From Anthoceros angustus (lineage: Eukaryota > Plantae > Anthocerotophyta), in the NCBI GenBank assembly GCA_010909165.1, contig MU008177.1, forward strand, positions 682,001 to 746,000: a DNA stretch of 64,000 nt, written 5' to 3'. Shown one piece after another: positions 369 to 37,380 of the stretch. Position numbers and translations under genes: made by a program. Within the stretch, counting starts at the first letter, position 1. Each line of letters begins with the position of its first letter. The notes beneath the pieces are model-generated. The model saw only the letters and a program-made list of their open reading frames with translations. It did no database searches and was not told where the DNA came from.

Positions 369-1760
369 CTCTTAAACATAGCATCCAAAAAACAATTTCA
401 ATAATCAAACACAAGAGAGAAAAAACTTTTTCAAGACAAAGAAGCCTTAATTGCAAACACACTAGTACCATTGATGGTTCTCAAACTTTTGTCAATATCT
501 GGCTCTAAACAACATCAAGGACTTACCTTTGCCAAGGGTGCAAGCTACCACAATTATAAACCTCGACACCTGGGTGTCTGTGTTTCAAATCACGACAAGG
601 GAAAAATGTATAAATTATGGCTGCAAGCACCTTTATATATTTCATTTCCCTTTTAATTTTAAAAAAGCATATCTCATGCAGATCTCACACAGCTAAACTC
701 GTAATAGGGAGTGGAGAGGGATCTCCAACATTATGGGGAGTTATAAGTTATCTAGAGGTGGATACTAGTCCTACCCTTTTGCGACTTATTTAGTTACCAT
801 TTGGGTGTGTAATCCAAACCTCTCTTGTAGATTAGTAATGGTCTATAAACCAATAATCAGTTGAATCACTAATTGTACAGGCCTATCTTCTAGAAAGCTC
901 TAGCCATATTGTTTTATAGCAATTTAATGATTTTTTTAGAATAAGAAAGTACACAGTAGAATTTTCTAGTGCCAACAATTAAAGGGCTCCAATCTTTACC
1001 TGTGGAAAGCATTATCTAGGCCTTACGATAGGTTGGCTAACTCTTCTTGCCACTGTAGGATGGGGGAGTGGAGCACAAAGGTATTGATTCACTACCTAAT
1101 TCTTTGGTGCTCTTCTTCACAAAGATAAAATGGCTGGGACTTCTCTGTAGGTCCAGCTAGCACGGCAAAGCTTGCACAGCTAGCAAATAATGGAGCCCCA
1201 ACCCTAGCTATGGTAAATAAAATGAGGCAAATAACTGTGAATTGAGATACAAGATAACCTACTCGTACACTCACTTGCCTATTTATCCAGATATCATCCC
1301 ACCATTGGTTCAGGTTGAGAAACACAAAAGGTAGGTTTGCGGTTGGAATGATCGAACTATCTAAATTGGATATATATACTTGCAACAAGTTAGTTCAATA
1401 GGTCTTTTGTTCTAACAACTATATGCTCGTTTCTAATTGTAAAGGAGGTTCAAACTCTAACTTGGAATCATATTGGACACTTGATATTTCTTTTCCTCCT
1501 TTCCTCCTCACACTTTCCTCCATGTCTTTGGGTTTAGCTGGGGCCCAAGCCCAAAACACTTTAACCTGTATAGGTACCTATCACACAATTTTAATTTTGG
1601 AATCAAAATAATGTGTTTTAGACAAAAGTATTCAAAAACTGAATTCAAACCCAAGTCAATTTATATCAATACTGCTAATTTATATATATCAATTTAAAAT
1701 ATTATAGACAAAGCAACAATTTGAGCAGTTTTCTACTCTCATCCATCCTCTGTAAATGTC

Positions 1761-1931
1761 TGTCCAAATGGCTTAGGCCAAATGGACACACACTTACAAC
1801 AACGTGGCTATTAAGCATTCTACACTTCAATCGGTACTTAGACGGGGTCCCTAGAAGGAGTGTACATGTCCTTGGAGCTATTATCTTAGGCACCCCATGG
1901 TCCAAGTTGTCTAATACCTGCAAGTCCCATG
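1761..1931. repeat. Dispersed ~170-bp repeat, second copy at 22145-22310
   Basis: Both begin tgtccaaatggcttaggccaaatggacacaca and end ...ccatgg(t/c)...aagtcccatg. Confidence 0.8.
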
Positions 1932-2286
1932 ATAGTCTCAAAGTCGTTCGAATGCCAACCTAGCATGGCCCCGATCAATATGCCCATTGAGTGGTTGATT
2001 GGACGCTAGGCTTGACCCAACGATGCTATCTAGATCTTCAGCTGCAACTCCGCACAAACGACGTCAAGCTAAAATACTTTCGACAACCAAAAATTGGGAA
2101 CAAAAAAACTCTCAGTGTAGCATATAATAATGCATTGTAAACTATATTTCTAAAAGTTTACAAAAAATATCTAATTTCAAAACTTAGATGCATTTTCTAC
2201 TGCAAGATGTCTCTATCTTCTAATCGTTCTGTTCTAAATTCAGCTCTATAAGAGACACTCATCTCTTGTGGATGAGTGTTTCTCTT

Positions 2287-3674
2287 TCACGTGAATTTAG
2301 CGGTAAGTCCTTTGTCTCCATTCACAATAAATTCATTGGTGCAACCACTTGAAGGGGAAGGTGACCCACTAGGATATGAGTATTCATCATCATAGCCATC
2401 GGACGAAGGGCTGTCACATTGATATGGCTCAGGTGCAGAAGGATAATCATCACTTGGCGGGGCATCATCATATGGGGTGCTAGGCTCAGACACTGTCGCT
2501 GGACTACTTGAACTGCTACTTGAACTGCTACTTGAACTGCTTCCGCCTTTAATTGAAATATCCCAATTATATGTTACATTGGCGTTGCATAGGCCTTCTA
2601 TACTCCCACTACCTTCAAGAGTAACAGTCCAGATCCTTTGAAATACCACCGGAAGATCAAAAATATCCACAAAATGATAGGGATCCCACCATATGAAATT
2701 CTTGGAATCATGACAATGTTTTGTGTGCTTTTCACATGGAGTTTTTCCGTCACCGCAACATGCTCTTGTAGAATGTTGAAATCCATACTTAGAAGGGTGG
2801 TGAATAATCTCATTAGTCGCATGAAAAGTTGGAAGAAAAATATATCGAGCTTCATGAAGTTTGTCATGAAAATGTGCATGAAGATGATTATTCATCTTCG
2901 TATTGTAGGCATGAATATGCTCATTGACATCTTTATTGCATCCAGATGATTTAGTAGCATGAATAACCAAAGGCGAACACCCCAAAGATCCAACATCAGC
3001 TATGATGAACTTTCGTGCTCCTTGTTTATACAATTTGTTGATATTAACCTCCATCCTCTTTATGAGGGTTTTACGAAATGCTTTCGTAGAAATATTCCGC
3101 CTAGCAACAATTCTTTGTATAAAGTCATCGGTACCTACATCAATATAATATAATGAGTGTGCTAGATGTCTTGCAACATGATGTCTTACATTACTGGTAC
3201 CCTTTCGCTTAAGTTGTTTAGCGAGACGTGGTACCAATTTTTCTTGAAACAATTCCACTTGACGATTAAATGGTAAAACACGTCCATATTGCCTTCCGGT
3301 CGTGCAACAATCCCGCTTTACGGAAGCAAAACTCACGCCTTCATGCGCCACTTTTGGTGCATGATACAAAAAGGGTTGGGGAATTTTTCATAACCAAGGT
3401 GGCTAGCAAAATAATCGACAAGACACGGCTGCTAAACGGCACGCCTTTTTGTATCAAATTCTTGACCATATGGATAGTAATTTGCTTTTGCATTTGCTTT
3501 TAAGTGCAAATGATTATTGTTACCTATATCTGCCAAAGAATCTCCAAAAGAATACAAAGATCCATTGAATCTATGGCGATGCGAAAGTGCCTGTTCCGAT
3601 ACAACGCTCGTGAATAAGATACATAAGATAATAATTTGAATCCTTGATATATTGAAGAATAGTTTCCTCCCCAT
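2287..3674 (-). CDS. GDSL esterase/lipase, intronless, with Ser/Pro/Asp/Tyr-rich C-terminal tail; frameshifted around 3370-3450
   Basis: Signal-peptide-like N-terminus, FGDSLADIGNN, GVSFAS, YIDVGTDDF, GARKFIIADVGSLGCSP, CCG, WDPYH (DxxH). Split across ORFs 3432-3674 and 2287-3369. Confidence 0.8.
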
Positions 3675-5513
3675 CTCTTAAACATAGCATCCAAAAAACA
3701 ATTTCAATAATCAAACACAAGAGAGAAAAAACTTTTTCAAGACAAAGAAGTCTTAATTGCAAACACACTAGTACCATTGATGGTTCTCAAAGTTTTGTCA
3801 ATATCTGGCTCTAAACAACATCAAGGACTTACCTTTGCCAAGGGTGCAAGCCACCACAATTATAAACCTCGACACCCAGGTGTCTGTGTTTCAAATCACG
3901 ACAAGGGAAAAATGTATAAATTATGGCTGCAAGCACCTTTATATATTCCATTTCCATTGTTAGTTTAAAAAAGCATATCTCATGCAGATCTCACACAGCT
4001 AAACTCATAATAGAGAGTGGAGAGGGATCTCCAACTTTATTAAGAATTGCAACTTATCTAGAGGTAGATACTAGTCCTATCCTTTTGCGACATATTTATT
4101 TACCATTTGGGGGTGTAATCCAAACCTCTCTTGTGGATTAGTAATGGTCTATAAACCAATAATCAATTGAATCACTAATTGTATGGGCCTATGTTCGAGA
4201 AAGCTCTAACCATATTCTTTTATACCTATTTAATGATTGTTTTTTTGAGAATAAGAAATTATACTATTGCAGAATTTTCAAGTACCAACAACTAGGGGAT
4301 GCAAGTGCGTAAACAAGTTGTAAATGCACAAGATGCAAGTTAATAAAGAAGCAATCGTGTAGAAGAAGATGAGGATAATTTCAATATTATAAACTTGAGG
4401 TCTTTCGTGGAGGAACTCACATATGAGAGTTGTCATCACTTGACAATGATTTACAAGCCACGTCTAAGTAACCTAAAACAACTAAACTAATGATAAGACT
4501 ATCTGAAAAGAGGTCCCAAAGTTGTAATCTTGTTCAATGGACAATAAAACACAAAGTTAGTATTTAGGGTGAAAGGAAGGCGTGTAAGATGCAATTCAAC
4601 ACATCAAAACCAGACAGTTGGTGTTGGAACTAGAAGTTTTGGAAATAGTCCTTCGGTGAGCGGTTACATATAACTTAAATATTAGTGTAAATTCACAGAG
4701 AGCCTAAGAGCTAACATGAACGTTTAGCAGGGTGCTATTGAGGCGTTGGACATGCCTAGACAAACATTCTTTTGCTAATTCTCGCGGGAAGGCTACTTTG
4801 CAAATCCTAGGCACACAAGCTTTCATGTTTTTCAGCCTTTCGATATGAGATTTTAACAATGGGCTAAGAAATGGAATCATGTTTCTTGAATTGTGAATTT
4901 GAGGCTTGCATGCTTTAGAGTCGAAAGATAAGTCACAAAAACACAATATGAGATGTAGCTAGAGCAGCTTTAGAATTTTTAATATTGAGACCCTTAATAG
5001 TGATACCCAGATAACAAGTGTAATAGAATACTTTCATGCATACAAAGTTGAGGGCCAAGTAAGTTTGGTTCCCTTGTTGATGTGGCATGTCATGATCCAC
5101 AGTTAAGAGTGGATGATGACGTCGAATAGCCTTGCTGCATACGACAAAGAGAAAATGCACAAGGGAAAGCATCAGAAACTGTCCACCAAGAATATACGCA
5201 TATATCACTTATGTGACTCGCCTTCCCACTATACATACATATATGTATATACATATGTAAGATAAGATAATTAAGATAAGCTTTATTGAACCAAGATATA
5301 AGAAGCAAGACTCGGCACTAACCTCTCGTTTTATTTGCGAAGTGGTATGTGCCTGTGTATGGTATATACGGGCGCATCAGATATTATTTTGTCCCATAAT
5401 ATATTGCTGTGTATGCATACATATTATGTAAACCACAGAACTTAAGAAAAAAATGTGCCTGCACTTTCTCTCCCCTTTGATATGCCATGGTGGGACAGCA
5501 TGCAACATAGGAC

Positions 5514-5638
5514 GATCGTCCATTCACTTGATTTTTGGTGAGGTTCAAACTATGACCAAACAACATGATCAAGTTGCGATCGTCCATTTGTCTGATTTTC
5601 GGCGAGGTCCAAACGGTGGCCAAACAACATGCTCAAGG
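5514..5638. repeat. Two ~61-bp direct repeats, 64-bp period
   Basis: cgatcgtccatt...tgattt...gaggt.caaac...ccaaacaacatg.tcaag occurs twice. Confidence 0.75.
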
Positions 5639-6049
5639 CAGCCGGAGTTGGTGAGTAGCTCGTTTCTCTCTTGGAGTGCTGGAATCGCAGGCGTGGACAT
5701 ACCCTATTTCTCTGTCTCTGCTATGCATTGTGTCAAAATTAATAAACAAAGCAAAAAATCATGCTGTATTAAACAAGAGAATAAACAAGTGACAAGGACA
5801 AAACCCTTCTAGCTCATATATACCAGAGCAACTAGAATTATAAATAGTAAATTTTACTTTTTTGAAATGGTAATATCTATTTCTTCTAAGTACAGCTATT
5901 AAGAAGAAGAAGAAGAAGAAAAGAAGAATTTTATTTAAGAATTTTAAGGAGTTGGTTGTGGGGCAACGAGTCCTTATACTGACTTCCAAACTTGGACTTA
6001 GACATGAGTTGAGTGCATACTTGGGGAAACATAATCTTTCGCCGACGCC

Positions 6050-6750
6050 TTGGAATCTGGCAGACGTGCACTGTGATGTGATGCCGAGTGGCGTTCCTGA
6101 TAACTTGTTTGTTGGCACCTGTCTGGTGGTCATGTATGCAAAAGGTGGCGGATAGTTGGACAGCGTGGCCAACATCGGATGCCCTGAACATCTGGGGTAT
6201 GGAAATTACGGTGAGCTTAAAAGATGCATGCCCGGTCCGCGACAGCAAGGGCACAAAGGATGCGGGGGCATAGAATGCCCTGATTGCTGCGATGGAGCAT
6301 GAGCGCTTGTTGTGTATGGAAAAGTGGAGTAGGAAGGCCTCATTTTGGCTGGCCGTGTTATCTCTGCTTGCCTTGGCTTGCGTAGGCCTTCAGAAAGGGC
6401 AGGAAACTGCCTGATGACTGCACGGCCATGGATGAAAAAGCCACTTTGGCTGACCCTGCTACTTTTGCTTGCCTTCTAACGGCCTGCGGAAACACTTGTG
6501 CCTTGCAGAAGGCCCAGGAGGTAGCTGCATTCACTGATTTATGGAAGAAGACTGCTGGGTAACTTAGTCATGGGCAACTGCCAAAATGTGTCGAAACAGA
6601 AGATTGCCTTGTTTTCAGCAGCTCGATCCACGTAGAGTGCGGTGACATGAAATGCTTCACTTGGCTGGCCCTGTTATTTGTGCTTGCCTTTTACAGGCCT
6701 GATGAAACACTTGTGCCTTCCGGAAGGGCAGCCAGGGTGCTCAGGTTTGT
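6050..6750 (+). pseudogene. Decayed PLS-class PPR relic
   Basis: VHCDVMPSGVPDNLFVGTCLVVMYAKGG resembles an L-S PPR junction. Further fragments LAVLS..AC..GLQKG and LHSLIYGRRLLGNLVMGN, with many stops and frameshifts. Confidence 0.6.
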
Positions 6751-10037: not shown

Positions 10038-12078
10038 TCACTTTTCGAGCACAAACTCCTGAACTTGAATCCCGGTGTGGCGAGCTCCCCCCTGAATGCT
10101 CAACAACACGGTGTCCTGCGCTTTCAGGCTTGTTACTGGGATGGCCAGGCCTCCTCCATTCTCCTCCAGCGCTGCACGAACGATGCTGACAATCACGCAC
10201 AGTAGTCTGGCAGAGGGGGGAGGATGGCAAGGAGGATCATGTCTTTACCTGTGGAGGGTTGGACCAGACAGACTGTTTCTGCGTTCTGAAGGAGTAGGCT
10301 GTGCTTTGAACCATCAGCCTGCATCCGGTAGGCAAGGGGGTTGAGTCAGTGGCAACGTACCCTTCGTTGTGCTTGAAGCTCTACTGGAAGGACTTCTTGA
10401 CACATAAGTATAACACACCTCGCCTTCGACGAGCATGAGCGGCCTCGATTCGATCTTCGAGCGACCAACCAGAACGGCCCGTGTCTGTCCACTCTCGTCA
10501 GCCACGAGTACCTCAACCCCAGTTCGCAGCTCGGAGAGATACGACGTCCTCCCACCTGGCATGGCCACATAGGCATGTACAGGGCCCTGCCAAAGGAACC
10601 TGATCATGGGCGTTAATGGCACCAACCATCCAGTCATCAAGCACAGTAATAGCTTCTGAGCGCTCCAACTGCTTACCGCATTCACACGGAAAGGTCGGCT
10701 AGCAATGTACGACGACTCCAGACACTCCGAATGCACCAGAAACAAAGCCCTTGCAAAAGAGCCAACCTGAAGAAGGAAGGCAAGTCAGCAGAGCCCCAGC
10801 AAATTGCACCCTTCCGCCTGATAGCAGACCCAGCACTTACCAAGAGCCCTTCACCAGGTCGCAACAGGCTGCAGAGATCTACGCAGACTCGATCCCCCAT
10901 ACCAACAGGTTGAACTCTTGTAATAGTAGCCGAAGTCAATTTCACCCTGTTCTCAAGGGCAAGCCTGGATTCCAAGTATGCCTGGTTAAAATCAGACATT
11001 AGAGCTCCCTCGGAAGGTTTTACTAAACCACAGCCGTGCAAACCCACACCACACCCTGAGAACCTCGGGGAACAAAGACAAACAACCTTAAGGTCGAAAA
11101 CCTCTGCAGGATCCTCTGTCTTGAGAAGGACACCATCAGTCCCTGTCTCCAGAGCCTGAAAGCCAACCGAACTCATCAAGATGTTTGTGACTCCAACACA
11201 GCCCAGCCACCACAACATTTTCTCAAATCACCTCGAAACACAGCTTCGCATCCATCGCAGAAGTCGCTGTAGCAAAGATTGACGATGGGCTGTTTTGAAA
11301 CGCCGCCACCATGTTCTCAGCTGGAATAATCTGTCCACAGGCCCCCAGCATGAATAACCTTCCAACGCAACCAACAATATCGCAACCAGAAGCAAGCAGG
11401 ACCGCAGTACCTGCCAGTCCAAAGCATCCATAACCACAATGTCCGCCTTCCCAACAAGCGACCTCACCACATCCTGTTCATTCCCAGAAGCCACCCCTCC
11501 CAGAACCGCAACCTGATTGCCCTCGTAGTCATAGAATTGCCCGTCCCTGAGCACCAGAGGCTCTATCCGGGCCACCGCTGCCAGTCCATCACAAACGCTG
11601 CTTCAGCAAGACAGGCAACGTGCATGCCAAATCGCAAAAAGCCGAAACGAGCTGACTCCGAGCTCCTACAGTTCCAAGACTCCGCCAGCTCCTGGGTCTG
11701 CGGTGTGAAGACGAAGGTACTCCATCCTCGCTCCACAGCCGCTGTCATCACATCCTTGTTCCGAGTCCACACCCACACTTTCTTCTCCCCCGCGTGCATT
11801 CTCACACCGGACGCCTTCCTCCCAGCTCGAATCCCGCAGGCCGCGGCCGCCGCTGCTCCCATGGGCCCCGACCCGCGCTGCAGCTGCAGTGCAGCTGCTG
11901 CACCTGCAGGGCCGCCATCGTGTAGCCCTGTTTCGCCCGGAGAAGCCGCACAGTAGAACGGGAGTTTTGGAAGCGGGAGCTGCGATGGCGGAGGCGATCT
12001 TGTGTGGGTCTCAGAGGGGGCTGCCGCCGGGGTCGCGCTCAGGCCGGAAGCGCAGAGGCTGCAGGCAAGAGCGGCCAT
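10038..12078 (-). CDS. 3-dehydroquinate synthase II-like protein, plastid-type (At3g28760-like), about 9 exons; alternative start at 11862
   Basis: [25 protein letters not shown]; DWQ|[12 protein letters not shown]; [11 protein letters not shown]; [25 protein letters not shown]; [27 protein letters not shown]; LLQNAETV; GARHTG...FVLEK*. Canonical GT-AG junctions. Confidence 0.92.
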
Positions 12079-12110
12079 GGGGGCTGGGTGTCCTGCGCGC
12101 GGGGGAGCAG

Positions 12111-13330
12111 AGTGTGTTTGACGGACTTGGTCAGAAAGATCTGGTGACAGGGAATGGCTTGATTGCAGGGTATTCCCAACAGGGCATTGGGCAGAAAGCC
12201 CTTCGGCCCTACTGTGAGATGCAACAAAAAGGCATCTCTGTACCCAATTCTGCGACGTTTTTTTGTGCCTCCTGCAGGCATGTGCCAGTCTGGGCACGTC
12301 AGCTTTGGGGAATGGAGAGCAGCTTCATGGGGAAAGAAGGAGGATATCAAACTTGTCGGCCGCGTTTTGGTTAATATGTAGGCAACGTGTGGCAGCTTGG
12401 AAGATGCTCAGAGAGTGTTCGATGGACTTGCTCAAACAGATGTGGTGACTTGGGCTGCTATGATAGCAGGGTATTCCCAGCAGCGAATGGGCCTGGAAGC
12501 CCTTGGTCTCTACAGTGCAATGCAAATTCTGTCACAAGTGTGTGCTTCCTGCAGGCAGTGGGCACTCTGGCTCTGGAGAGAGGGAAGCAGATTCATGCAC
12601 AGATTGCAGAGGTGAGACATCAAGCTGATGTGTTTGTAGGCAGTAGTTGGTGAACATGTTTGTGAAGTGCGACAGGATGGAAGACGCTCAAAGAGTGTTT
12701 GACGGACTCGGTCAAAGAGGCTTCTTGACATGGAACAGCATGTTTGCAGGGTATGGGCCAGAAAGGCCCCAATGCCATCCAAGAAGGCAGCAATGTTTGT
12801 GAAGTGCGACAGCTTGGAAGACGCTCAAAGAGTGTTTGACGGACTCGGTCAAAGAGGCTTCTTGACATGGAACAGCATGTTTGCAGGGTATGGGCTAGAA
12901 AGGCCCCAATGCCATGCAAGAAGGAGGCAATGCTGTCCCCGACTCCATCACGTTTGTGTGCCTCCTGCAGGCATGTGCAAGTCTGGGAAGTCCAGCTGTG
13001 GGGAAGGGGAATCCAAGGAGCTTCATGCTGAAATTAGAGAATGAGGACATGAAGCTGATGCCTTTGTAGCTAACAGTTCGGTAAACATGTATGCAAATTG
13101 GAAGATGCTCAGAGATTGTTTGACGGGCTTGGTGAGGAAGATGTGTTGACGTGGAATGCCATGATAGCAGGGTATTCGCAGCAGGGCATGGACCAGAAAG
13201 CGCTGGTTTTGTACAGCTTTATGCTAGACAAAGGGATTACTGGGGAACTTTGTTGTGTCTCCTGCAGGCATGTGCAAGTGTGGGCTCCCCAGCTTTGGAC
13301 ATGGGGAAGCAGGCTCATGCGCAAATCAGA
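12111..13330 (+). pseudogene. Frameshifted PLS-class PPR relic containing a ~123-bp internal duplication (12656-12778 / 12793-12915)
   Basis: EDAQRVFDGLAQTDVVTWAAMIAGYSQQ; FVKCDSLEDAQRVFDGLG; EDAQRLFDGLGEEDVLTWNAMIAGYSQQG; CLLQACASVGSPALDMGKQAHAQI. Many stops and frameshifts. Confidence 0.9.
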
Positions 13331-13609
13331 GGAGGTGGTCATCACAGTGATGGGTTGCTATCCCGGTTTGGTCGCGCTGTAGCAAGCTCACGGCAGTAAC
13401 CGAAAAATTATGATGCGCAGCAGCTCCTCCGGGAGGTGCTCCAACGCTTATCCCTCCATCCTTGCAAGTTGCCATCACTGTCGGAACAGTGAGCTCGGAG
13501 TTACATAGAATGGAACCCCTAATAAGCTTGGCAACTGCCCTAGGTTCGCTTCCGTGTTGCGTCCGGGGCCCAAGCTTGTGCACCGGCAGGAAGATGCGGT
13601 GTTGCCAAA

Positions 13610-24454: not shown

Positions 24455-25210
24455 GGACTGCCTTGAGCTTCAGTACTTGGAGCAGCGGATTCTTCTCATT
24501 TGTCTTCAGATTCTTCCCATTTGTCTTCAGAATGCTTGGACAGCAGCCAACAAGCGCCCGGTCGTCTGTGAGGGTTATGATTTCAGGAGCAGCCAAGGAC
24601 CTTCTGTGGTAGTTTGTGATGTGAGTGAAGCCACCTCCATCTGGAATGGTGAGACAGAAATAGAGCAACCTTGAGATTTCGCTTCAGATGAGGTCAAGAA
24701 GGTGATGAAATTCGGGCAGGTCCTCGAAGGAGGCGAAGTTCAACATAATCTCCAGTGTCACAATAACAGATAGTTCGCAACTCCCGGTTGCAGAGTGCTG
24801 AATAACTTAGTACAAGTACCCACATTCTGAAGATGAAAGGGGCTCACACTTGGAGTTCAAGTTGTCAGGACCTCAGTCTGTGATTGTCTTGTCGGCAAGT
24901 TGATGGAACTGTTCTACAGGCAAGGTACTGCAAGCAAGTCAGCTACATAGCACAGACCTCACCAGATTTGTGTGCTTCGCAGCTAACCTATCTCAAACTA
25001 CGTAGTAAAAGGGCAACAACAGACACAATCAGCCTGTCCTAAGAATTCTCATTCGAGTAAATAGTTTTCAAAATTTTGATTCCGCAATCCAGAAAGCCTC
25101 ATAAGTCTCCACAAGAAGTATTCTTCTCCACTCGAAAACGCTGTTCTCGTCTCCCAGTAGGAATCAGGTCAAAACCGTGTTAGCAAATTAGGGTTTCCGC
25201 ATCTGGAACG

Positions 25211-25796
25211 CTAGATGGCCAGGTACCGCTTGGATACTTGCTTGCCAGCAACAAGGCCGGCAGCAACCACGCCTCCCAACGCGCCTGCAATGGCGGCCGT
25301 GCGGGGGCCGGCAGCAGCCTTATAGAGAGCCCCGGTTCCAAGCCCCGCAGCTGCGCTGTTCAGAATGTCGTCACTGCTCCGGTAATGGCAAGCGGCGCTC
25401 TCCATGCCGGCGTAGAACAAGCCTAGAATGCCTAAAGTGTTGCCGTAGCTCCTGCCTCTGTGCCCCGAGGCATTCAACACCCGATTCACCCGCAGCTTGG
25501 CAGTGTCCCCCGCTTCTGTAGATCGTAAACCCTCGGCCAGCCCCTTTGCGCCTCCGGCAACAGCGCCCGACAGGTACCCGACTCCCGTGTAATACGTCAA
25601 GTTCTCGCTCCAACTCCGCCTCTTCACCGCGGCCTCCTCGGTGAAGAGCAGCTCCGGTGTGGTAGGCAGCCGGAAAATCGTGTCCAGTGACTTAGCATCC
25701 ACCGGCCCATACAGATCTGCGTAGGGGTTGTACAGGCGTGTGCCGCTGCCATCGCTGTCCCCTACAAATCCGCCGCCGTGCTCGGAATCCTCCATC
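25211..25796 (-). CDS. TIM23: Mitochondrial inner-membrane translocase subunit Tim23
   Basis: RLYNPY; LPTTPELLFTEEA...RRSWSENLTYYTG..YL.G; KLRVNRVLNASGHRGR..GN.LG..GL.YAGMES. Confidence 0.95.
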
Positions 25797-27018
25797 CGGC
25801 CAGTCCCCCAATTGCCTTCCTTCCCACGTCCAAAGCGCAATCAGAGCTGCAACACGTATCTCCCTGCCACGCGCAGAACACACCGACTTTCCTGGCATCC
25901 GCTTGTCTCCCTGTGCATCGCCCGCTGCCTGTGGTAACGGCGCAGATTTAACCAGGGCTACAGTGGCAGCAATCGGACCGGGGGAATTGTGCGTTATATT
26001 CCAGGATCTTCTTCCCTCGAGCTTCCAGTGACAGTCCACAAACGCTTATAGACTAGGTCCGTAAATGTGAATCAAACGCGTCACCGAGGATCGAAATCCA
26101 GACCGCCTATTCCCGAGACTTAACTGTCTACCACAGAGCTACATAACAGGGAGAGGAGCTTAAAGAGGAAGGCGACTTTCCATTTCTGAAAGACACGCTG
26201 AACCATGCCACCTCGCTCTCTCCTTCTCATCGCGCATAGACGATGCATTTTGTAAGTGCCCCACGGGAAAGCGGATATGAGGACGAGGGGGCCGCTGGGT
26301 GGGAGGCTATGGCTGCCACGGAGCAAACGGAGTCCGTGCTGCAACCCTGTGGAGGAATGGTGCAGGCGTTTATCAAGCCTTCGGGCCACGGCGGAGGACA
26401 GCAGTGGTGAAAGTGAGGGATTGGAAGTCGAGATTTATAGTTATCTGGCTGTTGGTGACTGTGTATTGGGGCAACAAATTGTGGGTGTTCTGGGGGGATG
26501 GAAATTTAAGACCTTATGCTGGATTGCAGATGAGCCAACAGGTGGGCAGTCTTTGCTGGTCGATTCTCATCGCAACTACTCCAGAACAAGGTTCCAGCAG
26601 GTAGGGTGGATGGTGATTTCCTGATGGCTCTGCTGTCAGCTTTTTGGGTTTGACAGTGTCAGGAGGTAATGACTGGCAGGCATCCTTGGTGGGCAGTTTG
26701 CAGCTGACCATGAGTAATCACCACAGACAGACCCCAAGTACGTGGATTTCGTGCACAGCACATCGAGGGAGAGGGAGGGCTGGCGGCTCGACCCTTGCTG
26801 GAACCCTGCTTGGGTCATCTCAAAAGATGCCGCCACACCCCAGCAAGGTCAACATGTGGCGGTAGGGAGAGCAGCTTACTTGGGGCTGGATCCAGTCAGG
26901 TACCTCTCTCCCGTTCAGGGGCTTCAGGGCTGTGGTCACCAGACAGGACTGGGTCTGACAAAAAAAAGTGGGAAAACCCTGCAGTGTTGAGAACAGTGAA
27001 GATTGTATTGAGTTATGG

Positions 27019-29106
27019 ATGAAATGGTGGGAGGATGGAGGGGTTGCTGGGGCCTATCAGGCGCCGGAGGCCATGAACCGGCGAGTGTTTGTTCCGAGGG
27101 AAATATTGTACCACATGTTGAAAGGGTGCATGGCAAGGCACGATCTGTTTCTTGGTAGGCGCATTCATGCTCTCGCTGTAAGAAGCGGGTACGGGATTGA
27201 CTCGTTTGTTGGAAACCAACTTATTCGGATGTACACCTCTCATGGGAGTTTGGGGGAAGCAAACCAGGTGTTCAACAAGCTCCCTGCGCCCAACCAGTTT
27301 GCGTGGGCTTCTATTATCGGAGCACATGGTGAGCAGGGTCAAGCTAAGGAAGCCGTAAGGCTCTATGAGCGCATGAAGCAAACAGGTGTGGAGCCAAATC
27401 AGTACATATTGGTAGCAGTGCTACAGGCATGTGCCTCTGCAGGGAATTTGTCGGCTGGCAAGCGGGTTCATGCTGACGTGATGGACAGTCGATTGGAATC
27501 GAACTTGTTTGTGGGAAGTACTTTGGTGGACATGTATGCCAAATGTGGGAGCTTGCAGGATGCTCGAAGGGTTTTTGATGCACTGCCTACCAGAAACGTC
27601 GTGACTTGGAGTGCAATCATAACAGCATATGCTCAGCATGGGCTTGGCCAGGGAGCCTTGGATCTTTACAAACAAATGCAGCAAGATGGCATGGCGGCAG
27701 CTAATCATGTCACTTTTCTAGGAATTTTGAAAGCTTGTAGTACAGTAGGGGCCATTCACGAGGGGAAGCAGATCCACTCAGAGATTCTAGGAAGGGGTCT
27801 TGAGGCAGATGTGTTTATAGGAAGCTGCCTGGTGGATATGTATGCAAAATGTGGGAGCCTTGAAGATGCACGGAGAGTCTTTGACAGACTATCAACCAGA
27901 AATCTGGTCACATGGAATGCCATGGTTGCTGGTTATGCTACGCAAGGGCTTGGTCAAGAGGCTCTAAAATTGTACTTCCAGATGGAGCAGAATGGGCTGT
28001 TGCTACCAAACCAAGTTACATTTGTGTGCATTCTTAAAGCGTGTAGCGGTATTGGGGCCATACAGCAGGGCAAGCGGATTCACTCGCAGATTCTGGAAAG
28101 GGGACTGGAAGCTGATGTGTTTGTGGGAAGCACCTTGGTGGATATGTATGGTAAATGTGGGGAACTGGAGGAGGCTCGCAAGGTGTTTGAAAACGTGTCA
28201 TCCAGAAACGTAGTCACATGGAATGCGCTCATCAATGCTTACGGCCAGCACAACGAGTGTGGAATGGCCATCCAGTGCTTTGAGGAGATGAAGGGTGCTG
28301 GTGTTGTCCCAGATGCGTCGACATTTGTTGGTCTGCTTATGGCCTGTAGTCATGTAGGTTGGGTAAGAGAGGGGCAACAGTACTTCGCTCTCATGACTCA
28401 AGAGCATAGGATACGGCCAGAGATCGAGCATTACACCTGCATGGTTGATCTCCTAGCTCGGGCAGGGCACCTGGCTGAAGCAGAACACATGTTGCAGACG
28501 GAGCCTCTTGCACATGACACGGTTGGGTGGATATCTCTCCTTCATGCTTGCAAGATGTTTGGCAACGTGGACCTCGGCAAGCGTTGCTTCGACCGCCTTG
28601 TGGAACTAGATCCACGACATGCCTCAGGATACACCATCATGTCAAACATCTACACAGATGCTGGAAGATGGGCAGATGCCGAATCCATCAAGAGTTTGAG
28701 AAAAAGCGCAGGTGCAGAAAAGAAGGCTGCAAGAGCCTTCATCGAAGTTAACAACAAGGTGCACGAGTTTGTAGTAGGACAGGAGCGTGGAGACACTGTT
28801 GCCAAACTGATCAGTCTGAACAGCCAAACGAAGGAGGAGGAGAAAGCAGACCATGCAGAGTCCACTGGCACAGAGCACGAAGAGGCCCTCTGCGGACATG
28901 CTGAGAAACTGGCATTGGCCTTTGGCCTCCTCAACACACCCGAGGGAACAAGCCTTCTGGTGGTCAAGAATCTGCGAATGTGCAATCACTGCCACTCCGC
29001 CACCAAGCTGTTGTCTAGGATAGAAAAGCGAGAGATTATCGTCAGAGATGCACACCGAGTTCATCACTTCACAAACGGAGTGTGCTCTTGCCGGGACCAC
29101 CGCTGA
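27019..29106 (+). CDS. PLS-class PPR protein (about 14 motifs, E1-E2) with DYW:KP-like deaminase domain ending ...CSCRDHR; true N-terminus unresolved
   Basis: L-S-P triplets (LVDMYAKCGSL.DARRVFD; VTWNA); E domains; KKAARAFIEVNNKVHEF in place of the PG box; HAEKLALAFGL; KNLRMCNHCH; HHF..GVCSC. Intronless. Confidence 0.95.
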   Translation: MKWWEDGGVAGAYQAPEAMNRRVFVPREILYHMLKGCMARHDLFLGRRIHALAVRSGYGIDSFVGNQLIRMYTSHGSLGEANQVFNKLPAPNQFAWASIIGAHGEQGQAKEAVRLYERMKQTGVEPNQYILVAVLQACASAGNLSAGKRVHADVMDSRLESNLFVGSTLVDMYAKCGSLQDARRVFDALPTRNVVTWSAIITAYAQHGLGQGALDLYKQMQQDGMAAANHVTFLGILKACSTVGAIHEGKQIHSEILGRGLEADVFIGSCLVDMYAKCGSLEDARRVFDRLSTRNLVTWNAMVAGYATQGLGQEALKLYFQMEQNGLLLPNQVTFVCILKACSGIGAIQQGKRIHSQILERGLEADVFVGSTLVDMYGKCGELEEARKVFENVSSRNVVTWNALINAYGQHNECGMAIQCFEEMKGAGVVPDASTFVGLLMACSHVGWVREGQQYFALMTQEHRIRPEIEHYTCMVDLLARAGHLAEAEHMLQTEPLAHDTVGWISLLHACKMFGNVDLGKRCFDRLVELDPRHASGYTIMSNIYTDAGRWADAESIKSLRKSAGAEKKAARAFIEVNNKVHEFVVGQERGDTVAKLISLNSQTKEEEKADHAESTGTEHEEALCGHAEKLALAFGLLNTPEGTSLLVVKNLRMCNHCHSATKLLSRIEKREIIVRDAHRVHHFTNGVCSCRDHR

Positions 29107-29331
29107 GAGTGGAGTTCATTAATGCCATGACATTTGTTCAAACTAGTTCTCACCCTTTCACCATGACCCTGTGATAAACGTTACGTAAGTAAATTCCCTC
29201 CTCATCAGCTAGCCTGGCTATCCAGAATACTTGCACGCATAAGGACCCATTCGGATTTTCCTAACAAGGATGATGATGAAGGCTCAGACGGCACCAGCCG
29301 GAGAGATTGAAGCAACGTGAGCAAGGTGGAA

Positions 29332-30162
29332 ATGGTGGGAGCCGAGGCGATTTGCAACACGGGACTCCCCGTGTGCAAGGCTGTTACCGTGCACCTGCTG
29401 TCAGGTACCTACAGACTCCGCGGCGTGCATCTGCAGCAATGCAACGCTTTCGGTGGCTGTAGGCTGAGACCTCGTCGCAGCCCTCGGCAGCTGATCGGCA
29501 AGCCTGCTTCCAGTTGCGCGGTGCCAAGAGCGGGGCCCTCTGATGAGGTTAGGGCAACGGAACAGGAAGAGCAGCAATCACCAGGAGTTGGTGCCAACGT
29601 CCAATCTGGTACGTGCTTCGTTGGTATGGTGCACAGTAGCGGCAGAGGCCAACTTCTTCTCCTGTCGCTGCGATTGTTTTTTTCTTGCATTGCAGAAGCA
29701 AGAGATCAGACAGAACAGCTGTGGCGTCTGCTTTTCTCCAATCCGTCCCAATGGTGGGATGATCGGAACAAGAAGGTGAGGTGACTTACCAGTTGGCAAT
29801 TGTGTGGATCCCCAGCTCCAGCAGTTTGGAATCAGATTTTGCTGTGAATTCATGGAGGAATGTGGTTTTACGTTCAGAGATACCCAAGTGACCCCGATTT
29901 TGTGAAGAAAGGCACGAAAGAGAGGCTGTGGATCGACGGTAATGTTCCTGCTTGGGTGCAAGCAGAGTTAGCTAAGTTGCCAGCGCCAGCTAGGCCACCG
30001 CCAAACGTGAGGCAGGCATACGCTCCTCCCTCTAACACAGAGCCGTACAGGCCAGGAGGTCGCATGGGACCCTCGCGCTACAGGCCGCCTGTCTCCGAGG
30101 CTGTGCAAGCCGATAGAGAGAGGCGGGCAAGGGAAATTCTGGAAGGGATCGGCTGGGAGTGA
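29332..30162 (+). CDS. Organelle-type protein with one OSB-like PDF motif; exons 29332-29608, 29696-29775, 29878-30162
   Basis: Spliced product contains LWRLLFSNPSQWWDDRNKK-RYPSDPDFVKKGTKERLWIDGNVPAWV, resembling the OSB PDF motif. GT-AG sites keep the frame. Confidence 0.75.
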
Positions 30163-30832
30163 CTATTCTTCGGGGGCGGACTGGAACGCCGTTCCTTGTA
30201 ATTACAGAACCGTTCCATGCAGTTACACAGACCATAGCCTCTCATTAGCCCCATAAGGTTAGGTTGAACAAAAATTCGGAATCGCAGAAATTATGTACAA
30301 CTCGACACTTTTTCCAAGGAAATTTGAAACAAGTCTGTCAAATTTGAAGTACCTAACTACGGGAAAGGATGCCAATCGGACTTGAGAAGGGAGGGTATAC
30401 AGAATTGCCTGCAATGCCACCTAAAAAATGCATCCGCCTGCAGCTCATAATTCCCCTAGTGGAAATCCAAACCGTCTGCATAGCAAAAATTCTATAAAAC
30501 TTATGCAGGTTCAATGGAAACCCAAGTACCAGTGAGCTGCTGCAATTTCAAAGCAACAGGCACCTGACCAGCGCACATCTAGAAATGTGCCCGCAGGCAA
30601 TTGTGGGATCTCTGAGCAAATTTAGCCACGAGGGGACCCCAACGAGAACTTACCAACGAGACCATAATGAACTTGTGATGACTACAGCAGCCACAGAGGG
30701 AAGTTGGGCATCCTCAAAACTTGCTGCATGATAACTTTGGACCACTGATGTGGAGGCCCTGCACCTCAGATATCTTTGCGGAACAATTGCTGTCCCTGCG
30801 TCCAATTTCTTGAACAGCTGCCTGCTCAACAT

Positions 30833-36969: not shown

Positions 36970-37380
36970 ACATTTATGTGCCTCCTACAGGCATGTGGGA
37001 GTGTGGGTGCGCTGGCTTTGAAGACGGGAAAGCAACTTCATGAACAAAATATTAGAGGAACAAGCCTTAAGGCCTTCAAGTTGATATAGCATGTACGCAA
37101 AGTGTGGCATCTTAGAGGATGCCTGGAGTGTGGAGTTTGATGGCCTACCTTTTTGACAAGAATTCCATCATGTGGACCATTAATATTGTAATCGCAAGAC
37201 ATTCCTAGCAGGTTATGGGTCAGGAAGCAAGCTTCATCTCTTCACTGTGCTGGAACAGGAAGGTATTACAAAACCAAATGTTGTGACATTTGTGTGCCTC
37301 TTCCAGGTGTGTGCTATTGTGTGGGTATCACACCTTTAAAGAGGGGAAAGAAGCTTCATGATCAGATAGAAGAATAGGGA
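36970..37380 (+). pseudogene. Decayed PLS-class PPR relic
   Basis: TFMCLLQACGSVGAL; GKQLHEQ; SMYAKCGILEDA; VTFVCLFQVCAIV; GKKLHDQIEE, in shifting frames. Confidence 0.8.

Follow-up and report, generated by a model that had tools for sequence, protein, structure and literature searches.

An expressed hornwort PPR gene with a DYW:KP-type domain, a shortened gating region and a probable role in organellar U-to-C editing

Introduction

DYW:KP domains are, to our knowledge, the sole candidates for enzymatic U-to-C conversion, and they are under development as base editors. Here we describe a gene for a pentatricopeptide repeat (PPR) protein with a domain of this type in the hornwort Anthoceros angustus (assembly GCA_010909165.1, contig MU008177.1). 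The gene lies in a stretch of 64,000 nucleotides, positions 682,001 to 746,000 of the forward strand, which we call the window and in whose coordinates all positions are given. It is an ordinary member of the known DYW:KP family, in a genome rich in such genes. We read it as a transcribed nuclear gene for a PLS-class PPR protein with E1 and E2 motifs and a DYW:KP-type domain, which probably serves organellar U-to-C editing.

The family takes its name from a Lys-Pro dipeptide (PMC11332814). Its hallmarks are the KP box, a hydrophobic residue at the x of HxE, the loss of the xHP tripeptide, an ending other than DYW and an essential lysine, Lys88 (PMC9478123, PMC11332814, PMC11845758), which has a role in the active site (PMC11845758, PMC11332814). 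Two hornwort-specific subgroups, DRH and GRP, have been described (PMC9478123, citing its ref. 13), and activity has been shown only for consensus designs of the GRP type (KP2 and KP3) and of the fern type (KP6) (PMC9478123). The gating domain was defined on the C-to-U enzyme OTP86, where removal of the beta-finger markedly lowers editing (PMC7611903).

Results

Coding frame and domain layout

The open frame at 27019-29106 (+) comprises 695 codons and a stop and lies wholly inside exon 4, which starts at 26985. In the 695-codon protein, Pfam recognised PPR, PPR_2 and PPR_1 (E 1e-61 to 1e-36), E_motif (3e-15) and DYW_deaminase (1.6e-30). The protein was cut into motifs by hand and the pieces were checked to tile exactly, which gave 15 PLS-type PPR motifs, E1, E2 and then a 128-residue DYW-like deaminase domain. 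The features of the coding region are given below, with the evidence for each in brackets.

27019..29106 (+): coding sequence; ATG 27019 is the first in-frame ATG downstream of a TAA in the leader (translation, RNA-like contigs)
27019..28518 (+): PPR tract, a partial degenerate P-like motif followed by L-S-P-L-S-P-L-S-P-L-S-P2-L2-S2 (tiling, Pfam)
28519..28719 (+): E1 and E2 motifs (Pfam, tiling)
28720..29103 (+): DYW:KP deaminase-like domain, 128 residues (Pfam, alignment, tree, profiles, fold)
28840..28899 (+): decayed second half of the gating domain, the beta-finger region of OTP86 (alignment, lengths, model confidence)
28897..28905 (+): HAE, zinc-binding His and catalytic Glu, within CGHAEK (invariant columns, tiling)
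28966..28995 (+): KNLRMCNHCH, with the Lys88 equivalent (K650), the CxxC zinc ligands and the next His (invariant columns, tiling)
29062..29103 (+): second zinc site HH...CSC (HRVHHF...CSC) and terminal DHR (translation, invariant columns, tiling)

All 14 invariant columns of a 60-sequence alignment (A1) are kept in the protein, including H, E, K, CxxCH, H and CxC; K650, E629, H627, C655, C658, H659, H682 and C689/C691 fall in these columns. A first-pass annotation of the same DNA, made from the letters alone, had reported KKAARAFIEV in place of the PG box, an HAE rather than HSE active site, and intact CxxC and C-terminal HH..CSC zinc ligands. Each of these is borne out: the box is present at the PG-box position, the active site reads CGHAEK, and the ligands are found in the protein as KNLRMC-NHCH and HRVHHF...CSC.

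Our independent motif parse also returned the list of position 5/last codes that had been read by eye for the S and P motifs, namely NN, AN, SN, SN, SN, NN, SN, ND and TD. From this list an A-rich target had been proposed. The four SN motifs make that a fair reading, but the roughly nine informative positions are too weak for the prediction of a unique site.

Assignment to the DYW:KP family

In the alignment, the box KKAARAFIEV is matched by KKPAKAxIEV in 39 relatives of the KP type and by K-x-PG-C-S-x-IEV in PG types. Between the His and Glu of HxE the domain has Ala where PG types have Ser, the xHP tripeptide after VHxFxxGD is lost in the alignment, and the C-terminus is DHR, not D-Y-W. Its 128 residues compare with 132-133 for KP domains and 136 for domains with xHP, with an extra deletion in the gating region. 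Five PG traits are all absent: the PG box, HSE, xHP, a gating region of 48-49 residues and the DYW ending.

Over the domain, the nearest database proteins were assembly proteins with 55-67% identity, followed by proteins of the ferns Ceratopteris and Adiantum (~50-54%) and by canonical seed-plant DYW proteins (~40-48%). The top 39 matches have in common the K-K-P-A-x-A box, the lack of xHP, CGHAEK, LLVTKNLRMC, VRDAHRVHHF and non-DYW endings.

In a maximum-likelihood tree of 96 domains, ours falls within a clade of HAE, non-DYW domains (support 99/99), apart from the HSE/DYW clade. Sequence profiles scored it at 205 bits for its own subgroup, 185 for DRH/GRP, 164 for fern KP and 136 for PG, the 185-bit KP profile having been built without the domain's own subgroup. 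Tree and profile classification (185 versus 136 bits) thus both favour the KP type that had been claimed on first reading, and on its sequence we place the domain firmly in DYW:KP and not in DYW:PG.

By sequence, the domain matches the solved PPR-DYW and OTP86 DYW structures. An AlphaFold2 model of it reached a mean predicted local distance difference test (pLDDT) score of 86.8, and Foldseek with this model retrieved 9kfx (E 8e-17) and the OTP86 structures 7o4e/7o4f (about 1e-10; 5e-11 for OTP86 DYW).

A sister subgroup to DRH and GRP

Within the same tree, the DRH and GRP domains form one clade (98/95). Our domain lies outside it, in a sister subgroup (99/85) together with ten other domains, and the two groups are joined in a hornwort-type clade with support 98/89. 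Members of the query's subgroup, of DRH and of GRP all come from the same pair of samples; the three are therefore paralogous lineages and not species variants. The lineage may accordingly be described as a candidate third KP subgroup beside DRH and GRP; the sample is small and was picked by similarity to the query, and a genome-wide tree is needed before the subgroup is called new.

The endings found in the subgroup are DHR (P0003), DHL, DHV, DDT, DSI, DDS, DNH, DDL and DKL, and one member, P0015, carries a longer tail beyond the usual end. The DHR terminus had been regarded as unusual. This view is not supported, since the ending is shared with P0003 and neighbouring domains have DHL, DHV, DHH and DNH, so that DHR is not an oddity of this gene.

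The gating region

Gating length was counted from the Gly after VHEFxVG to the His of HxE, with the following results.

DRH/GRP domains: 44-45 residues in 19 of 21
Fern KP domains: 45 residues in 7 of 7
PG domains: 48-49 residues
Subgroup of the query: 37-55 residues
Query: 39 residues

The gating region had been described as short and divergent, and on length the counts agree: with 39 residues it falls short of the 44-45 of the sampled DRH/GRP and fern KP domains and of the 48-49 of the PG type. By alignment and lengths, its second half is acidic and 5-6 residues shorter than in DRH/GRP domains. AlphaFold2 gave this half a pLDDT of 55-57, with nine model residues (66-74) below 50, and no regular structure. 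The canonical DRH domain P0009, modelled from the same 60 sequences, reached a mean pLDDT of 94.1 with no residue below 70 and a gating region above 89 throughout. Taken with the range of 37-55 residues among its relatives, this suggests that the beta-finger half of the gating domain is no longer length-constrained in the query's subgroup. A second HAE, at domain position 45 (KADHAEST), lies inside the decayed loop and was rejected as coincidental.

Transcription, exon structure and start codon

Contigs of four public runs were placed on 25200-30600. Runs X1 and X7 are RNA-like and X2 and X3 DNA-like; X1 comes from the same sample as the best DNA holder, and X7 from a related organism that is ~95% identical. 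GT..AG joints that remove 26413-26529, 26601-26696 and 26900-26984 are present in X1 and X7, and X2 and X3 run through these positions. Contigs of X1 cover the coding sequence at 100% identity, those of X7 at ~95% and without an insertion or deletion (indel). As the joints are found only in the RNA-like runs, the gene is transcribed and spliced, with three introns in its leader. The leader is ~630 nucleotides long and starts at or before 26092; its introns measure 85-117 nucleotides, and genes are dense. These two traits, together with the clade that the domain shares with the DRH/GRP types, point to a compact genome that is probably a hornwort's. The leader is composed as follows.

26092..26412 (+): exon 1, with five upstream ATGs; ATG 26277 opens a 45-codon, Arg/Ser-rich, presequence-like frame (X1 record 2, X7 record 23, translation)
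26413..26529 (+): intron 1, 117 nucleotides, GT..AG (joint in X1/X7, absent from X2/X3)
26530..26600 (+): exon 2, 71 nucleotides, frame open from exon 1; possibly a decayed first PDF half, with no profile match
26601..26696 (+): intron 2, 96 nucleotides, GT..AG (RNA-like contigs, dinucleotides)
26697..26899 (+): exon 3, with TAA 26715-26717 in the PPR frame and, at 26727-26831 in the same frame, the decayed second half of an OSB-type PDF motif
26900..26984 (+): intron 3, 85 nucleotides, GT..AG (RNA-like contigs, dinucleotides)

Over the coding sequence, X7 and the window differ in ~5% of bases (29/572, 11/298 and 72/1393) with zero indels. X7 shows its first indel at 29156, past the stop, and about ten indels fall within 50 nucleotides of 3' untranslated sequence in the next gene. 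The lack of a coding indel at ~5% divergence argues that the frame has been maintained in both organisms.

Frames were then worked out exon by exon. The PPR frame runs back via a split codon into exon 3, where it reaches TAA 26715-26717, and in the assembled isoform no ATG occurs in this frame between that stop and 27019. The first start that this isoform can use is therefore ATG 27019. The frame opened by ATG 26277 begins with the Arg/Ser-rich 45-residue peptide of exon 1, continues through exon 2 and ends at the same TAA in exon 3. The first-pass annotation had pointed to an upstream open reading frame, 26256-26624, as presequence-like and as a possible protein N-terminus. Its exon 1 part is real, but as written it extends from exon 1 through intron 1 into exon 2 and does not form an unbroken N-terminus. 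We rejected it in that role, since the RNA-like contigs show that the spliced frame from ATG 26277 stops at the TAA.

A possible alternative acceptor (CACAG) is found at 26726/26727, 30 nucleotides inside exon 3. If used, it would skip the TAA and yield a single frame from ATG 26277 to the end of the PPR gene. The corresponding joint 26600>26727 was not seen among the joints listed for the contigs, which drop minor forms.

All four runs show a 50- to 1000-fold rise in summed contig depth at 27372-27552 and 27734-27914, with contig breaks at 27552 and 27830-27854. These stretches are cores of S motifs (VDMYAKCGSL-DARRVF), which recur near letter-for-letter in hundreds of paralogues. Because the cores are common to paralogues, short-read assemblies fragment the gene family, and for this reason the protein collection holds no full-length orthologue. 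A full-length word search for one returned only paralogue-level matches of <=54% identity, with scores inflated by repeated PPR motifs.

A decayed PDF module in the leader

Of the 206 homologues that were fetched, 23 carry an OSB-type PDF motif, among them proteins of Diphasiastrum, Calypogeia and Sphagnum. A profile built from these 23 was run against 2479 six-frame pieces of the window. The two best matches (E 8.5e-9 and 5.5e-7) are the halves of the PDF motif in the next gene downstream. Third comes the piece of exon 3 that is read in the PPR frame (E 0.009, profile positions 22-54), and the one after it scores 0.81. The exon 3 piece also matched the PDF motif of P0026 in BLASTP (E 0.005). 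Its profile match starts at 26727, at the profile position of the intron in the downstream PDF gene, and directly after the possible CACAG acceptor.

For the first half of the motif, the profile found no match in exon 2. Comparison of the leader with the neighbouring PDF gene by BLASTN and TBLASTX gave no significant match, and the remnant was detected by the profile search only. Applied to the loci of the relatives P0001, P0003 and P0004, the profile found no upstream motif; only P0026, of the GRP type, has one, and the module is thus not general in the query's subgroup. The most economical reading is that the gene would descend from a presequence-PDF-PPR-DYW:KP gene whose front module has decayed.

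Long PPR proteins with a well-conserved PDF motif ahead of the PPR tract include P0097 and P0103 (Diphasiastrum), P0111 and P0154 (Calypogeia), P0156 (Sphagnum) and P0026, in keeping with a pairing that is widespread and not confined to proteins of the KP type. In the PPR proteins of lycophyte, liverwort and peat moss, the motif reads ..LW.EFFSDPSQWWDNR..K....PDFKHK.T...LW......P.WV... The stand-alone PDF gene occupies 29332-30162 (+), directly downstream of the PPR gene, and encodes a small protein of ~215 residues, which starts like a presequence and contains a single OSB-type PDF motif in a good state of preservation. Its exons lie at about 29332-29608, 29696-29775 and 29878-30162, are spliced in the RNA-like runs, and the PDF motif is split by a phase-0 intron. 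No Pfam family was found in this ~215-residue protein.

Neighbouring genes

A single-exon gene of the Tim17/Tim22/Tim23 family (PF02466, E 1.3e-28) lies at 25214-25795 (-) and is covered by an RNA-like contig. It stands head to head with the leader of the PPR gene, ~300 nucleotides apart. TBLASTN with the PPR tract found further PPR-like coding stretches at 11814-13351 (+) (E 1e-23), 37022-37333 (+) (3e-8) and 6063-6374 (+) (2e-5), none with a DYW-like part. On contig L003 of a relative, the gene for the DHR-ending P0003 and a second PPR-DYW gene (822 residues) are arranged head to head, at 998-3466 (-) and 4001-6016 (+).

Discussion

A site-specific organellar editing factor is the best reading of the gene, because of its family membership, its intact residues, its expression and the conservation of its frame. 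U-to-C is the most likely direction given the family to which the domain belongs; RNA binding and an organellar location are inferred as well. In such a mechanism, the 15-motif PPR tract would bind a single strand of organellar RNA, with the S2 motif sitting four nucleotides upstream of the target (-4). The code would read roughly 5'-Y-(A?)-n-A-A-n-A-Y-n-A-U-n-G-n-n-n-[U]. The target U would then be acted on by the C-terminal domain, which has the fold of a cytidine deaminase and carries Glu629, Lys650 and a catalytic zinc (His627, Cys655, Cys658).

Several observations weigh against this. The literal Lys-Pro dipeptide is K-A in our domain, so that the Pro that names the family is replaced by Ala. 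The position also varies in other members of the clade, with A in P0019 and P0035, L in P0002 and P0005, V in P0020 and S in P0029. The DRH-based design KP1 is not among the U-to-C-active designs KP2, KP3 and KP6 (PMC9478123), and KP6 also performs C-to-U editing (PMC9478123, PMC11845758). The beta-finger region is shortened and modelled as disordered, which has to be set beside the effect of its deletion in OTP86. Furthermore, ATG 27019 is preceded by ten upstream ATGs and lies inside a degenerate first PPR motif (W-x-K-L-C-D-x-G in relatives), and the acidic N-terminus that follows it contains no recognisable transit or targeting peptide.

Some of these points would suit a decaying or non-functional copy, transcribed and with an open frame, that a stop codon has deprived of its targeting peptide and PDF module, that has an eroding gate and that no longer takes part in organellar editing. 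The TAA at 26715-26717 stands in the spliced isoform of two organisms with no ATG before 27019, the ten upstream ATGs and the acidic start inside a degenerate motif would fit a damaged front, and the gating loop is short and of low model confidence. We nevertheless regard decay as unlikely: a frame of 2088 nucleotides retains every catalytic and zinc residue, and an orthologue ~5% divergent has no coding indel, whereas the flanking untranslated parts have many. In addition, use of acceptor 26726/26727 would leave out the stop and give back a single frame from ATG 26277; the site corresponds to the place of the intron in the neighbouring PDF gene.

Less likely still is an active editor that, its KP-type sequence notwithstanding, deaminates C to U or acts in both directions. 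The zinc site and the Glu for deamination are intact, the KP6 consensus protein is also active in C-to-U, and small substitutions can switch the direction (PMC11845758). A Gly precedes the His of HAE, and E64G is one of three changes in a C-to-U-favouring variant of KP6 (PMC11845758). Against this, Lys88, which U-to-C editing requires, is kept, the domain groups with KP and not with PG, and the designs KP2 and KP3, which are active in U-to-C, were modelled on GRP domains, within the same hornwort-type KP clade. We give very little credence to an RNA-binding protein that does not itself catalyse editing and serves, for example, in stabilisation or processing, or supplies or receives a deaminase domain in trans as in DYW1/DYW2-type partnerships, since the catalytic residues are all conserved and a complete domain is fused to its own full PPR, E1 and E2 tract, even though PG-type enzymes with deviant gating domains work with partners (PMC7611903) and the beta-finger region here is decayed.

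Returning to a U-to-C editing factor, the loose gating region of the subgroup and the stop-separated presequence/PDF leader are the two noteworthy features of the gene. Tentatively, they may be joined in one picture, in which a third KP lineage beside DRH and GRP, its beta-finger free of constraint on length and sequence, would supply an ungated or differently regulated U-to-C editor, and acceptors 26697 and 26727 would form a splicing switch. Use of 26697 would include the stop and use of 26727 would keep the frame, so that the choice would decide whether the presequence and the PDF remnant are included.

With its much reduced gate, this naturally occurring, expressed gene of a further subgroup would make a useful test of the need for the gate in the reverse reaction, and its domain is a smaller one for engineering. 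The gene model also shows what calls based on open reading frames alone miss in PPR genes: 5' exons, introns and N-terminal modules that have decayed.

Comparison with known systems

The C-to-U domains of the DYW:PG type (OTP86, 7o4e/7o4f; DYW1, 7w86; a synthetic PPR-DYW protein, 9kfx) have the same fold as our domain, with Foldseek E from 8e-17 to 1e-7, and the same zinc ligands, catalytic Glu and active-site Lys. Our domain differs from them in lacking the PG box, xHP and the DYW ending, in HAE for HSE and in a gating region 9-10 residues shorter.

The DYW:KP domains of ferns and lycophytes (designs KP4-KP7; Ceratopteris/Adiantum P0028, P0031 and P0038) resemble our domain in HAE, in the equivalent of Lys88, in the zinc ligands and in an ending other than DYW, and are 50-54% identical to it. 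They nevertheless form a separate clade, their profile scores 164 bits against 185 for DRH/GRP, and they have C-[DE]-HAE where ours has CGHAE, with strands of the NMRMC or IRV type.

With the PDF-PPR architecture, the gene shares a PDF-like second half in exon 3, in frame with the PPR tract, whose first position coincides exactly with that of the intron in the stand-alone PDF gene next to it. It departs from that architecture in that only the second half is detectable (E 0.009), in reading VDF for the PDF tripeptide, and in the in-frame stop that cuts the module off from any upstream start in the isoform seen.

The hornwort DYW:KP proteins of the DRH and GRP subgroups provide the closest comparison. 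Our domain belongs to a separate subgroup and ends in DHR, not DRH or GRP; its CxxC is C-N-H-C, the Pro of the KP box is Ala, and its gating region, at 39 versus 44-45 residues, is without the G-H-V-P-x-T-x-L-V-L stretch. What it has in common with them is the PLS-E1-E2-DYW layout, a K-K-x-A-x-A box for the PG box, the loss of xHP, the motifs CGHAEK, LLV-x-KNLRMC and VRDAHRVHHF, both zinc sites and a non-DYW ending.

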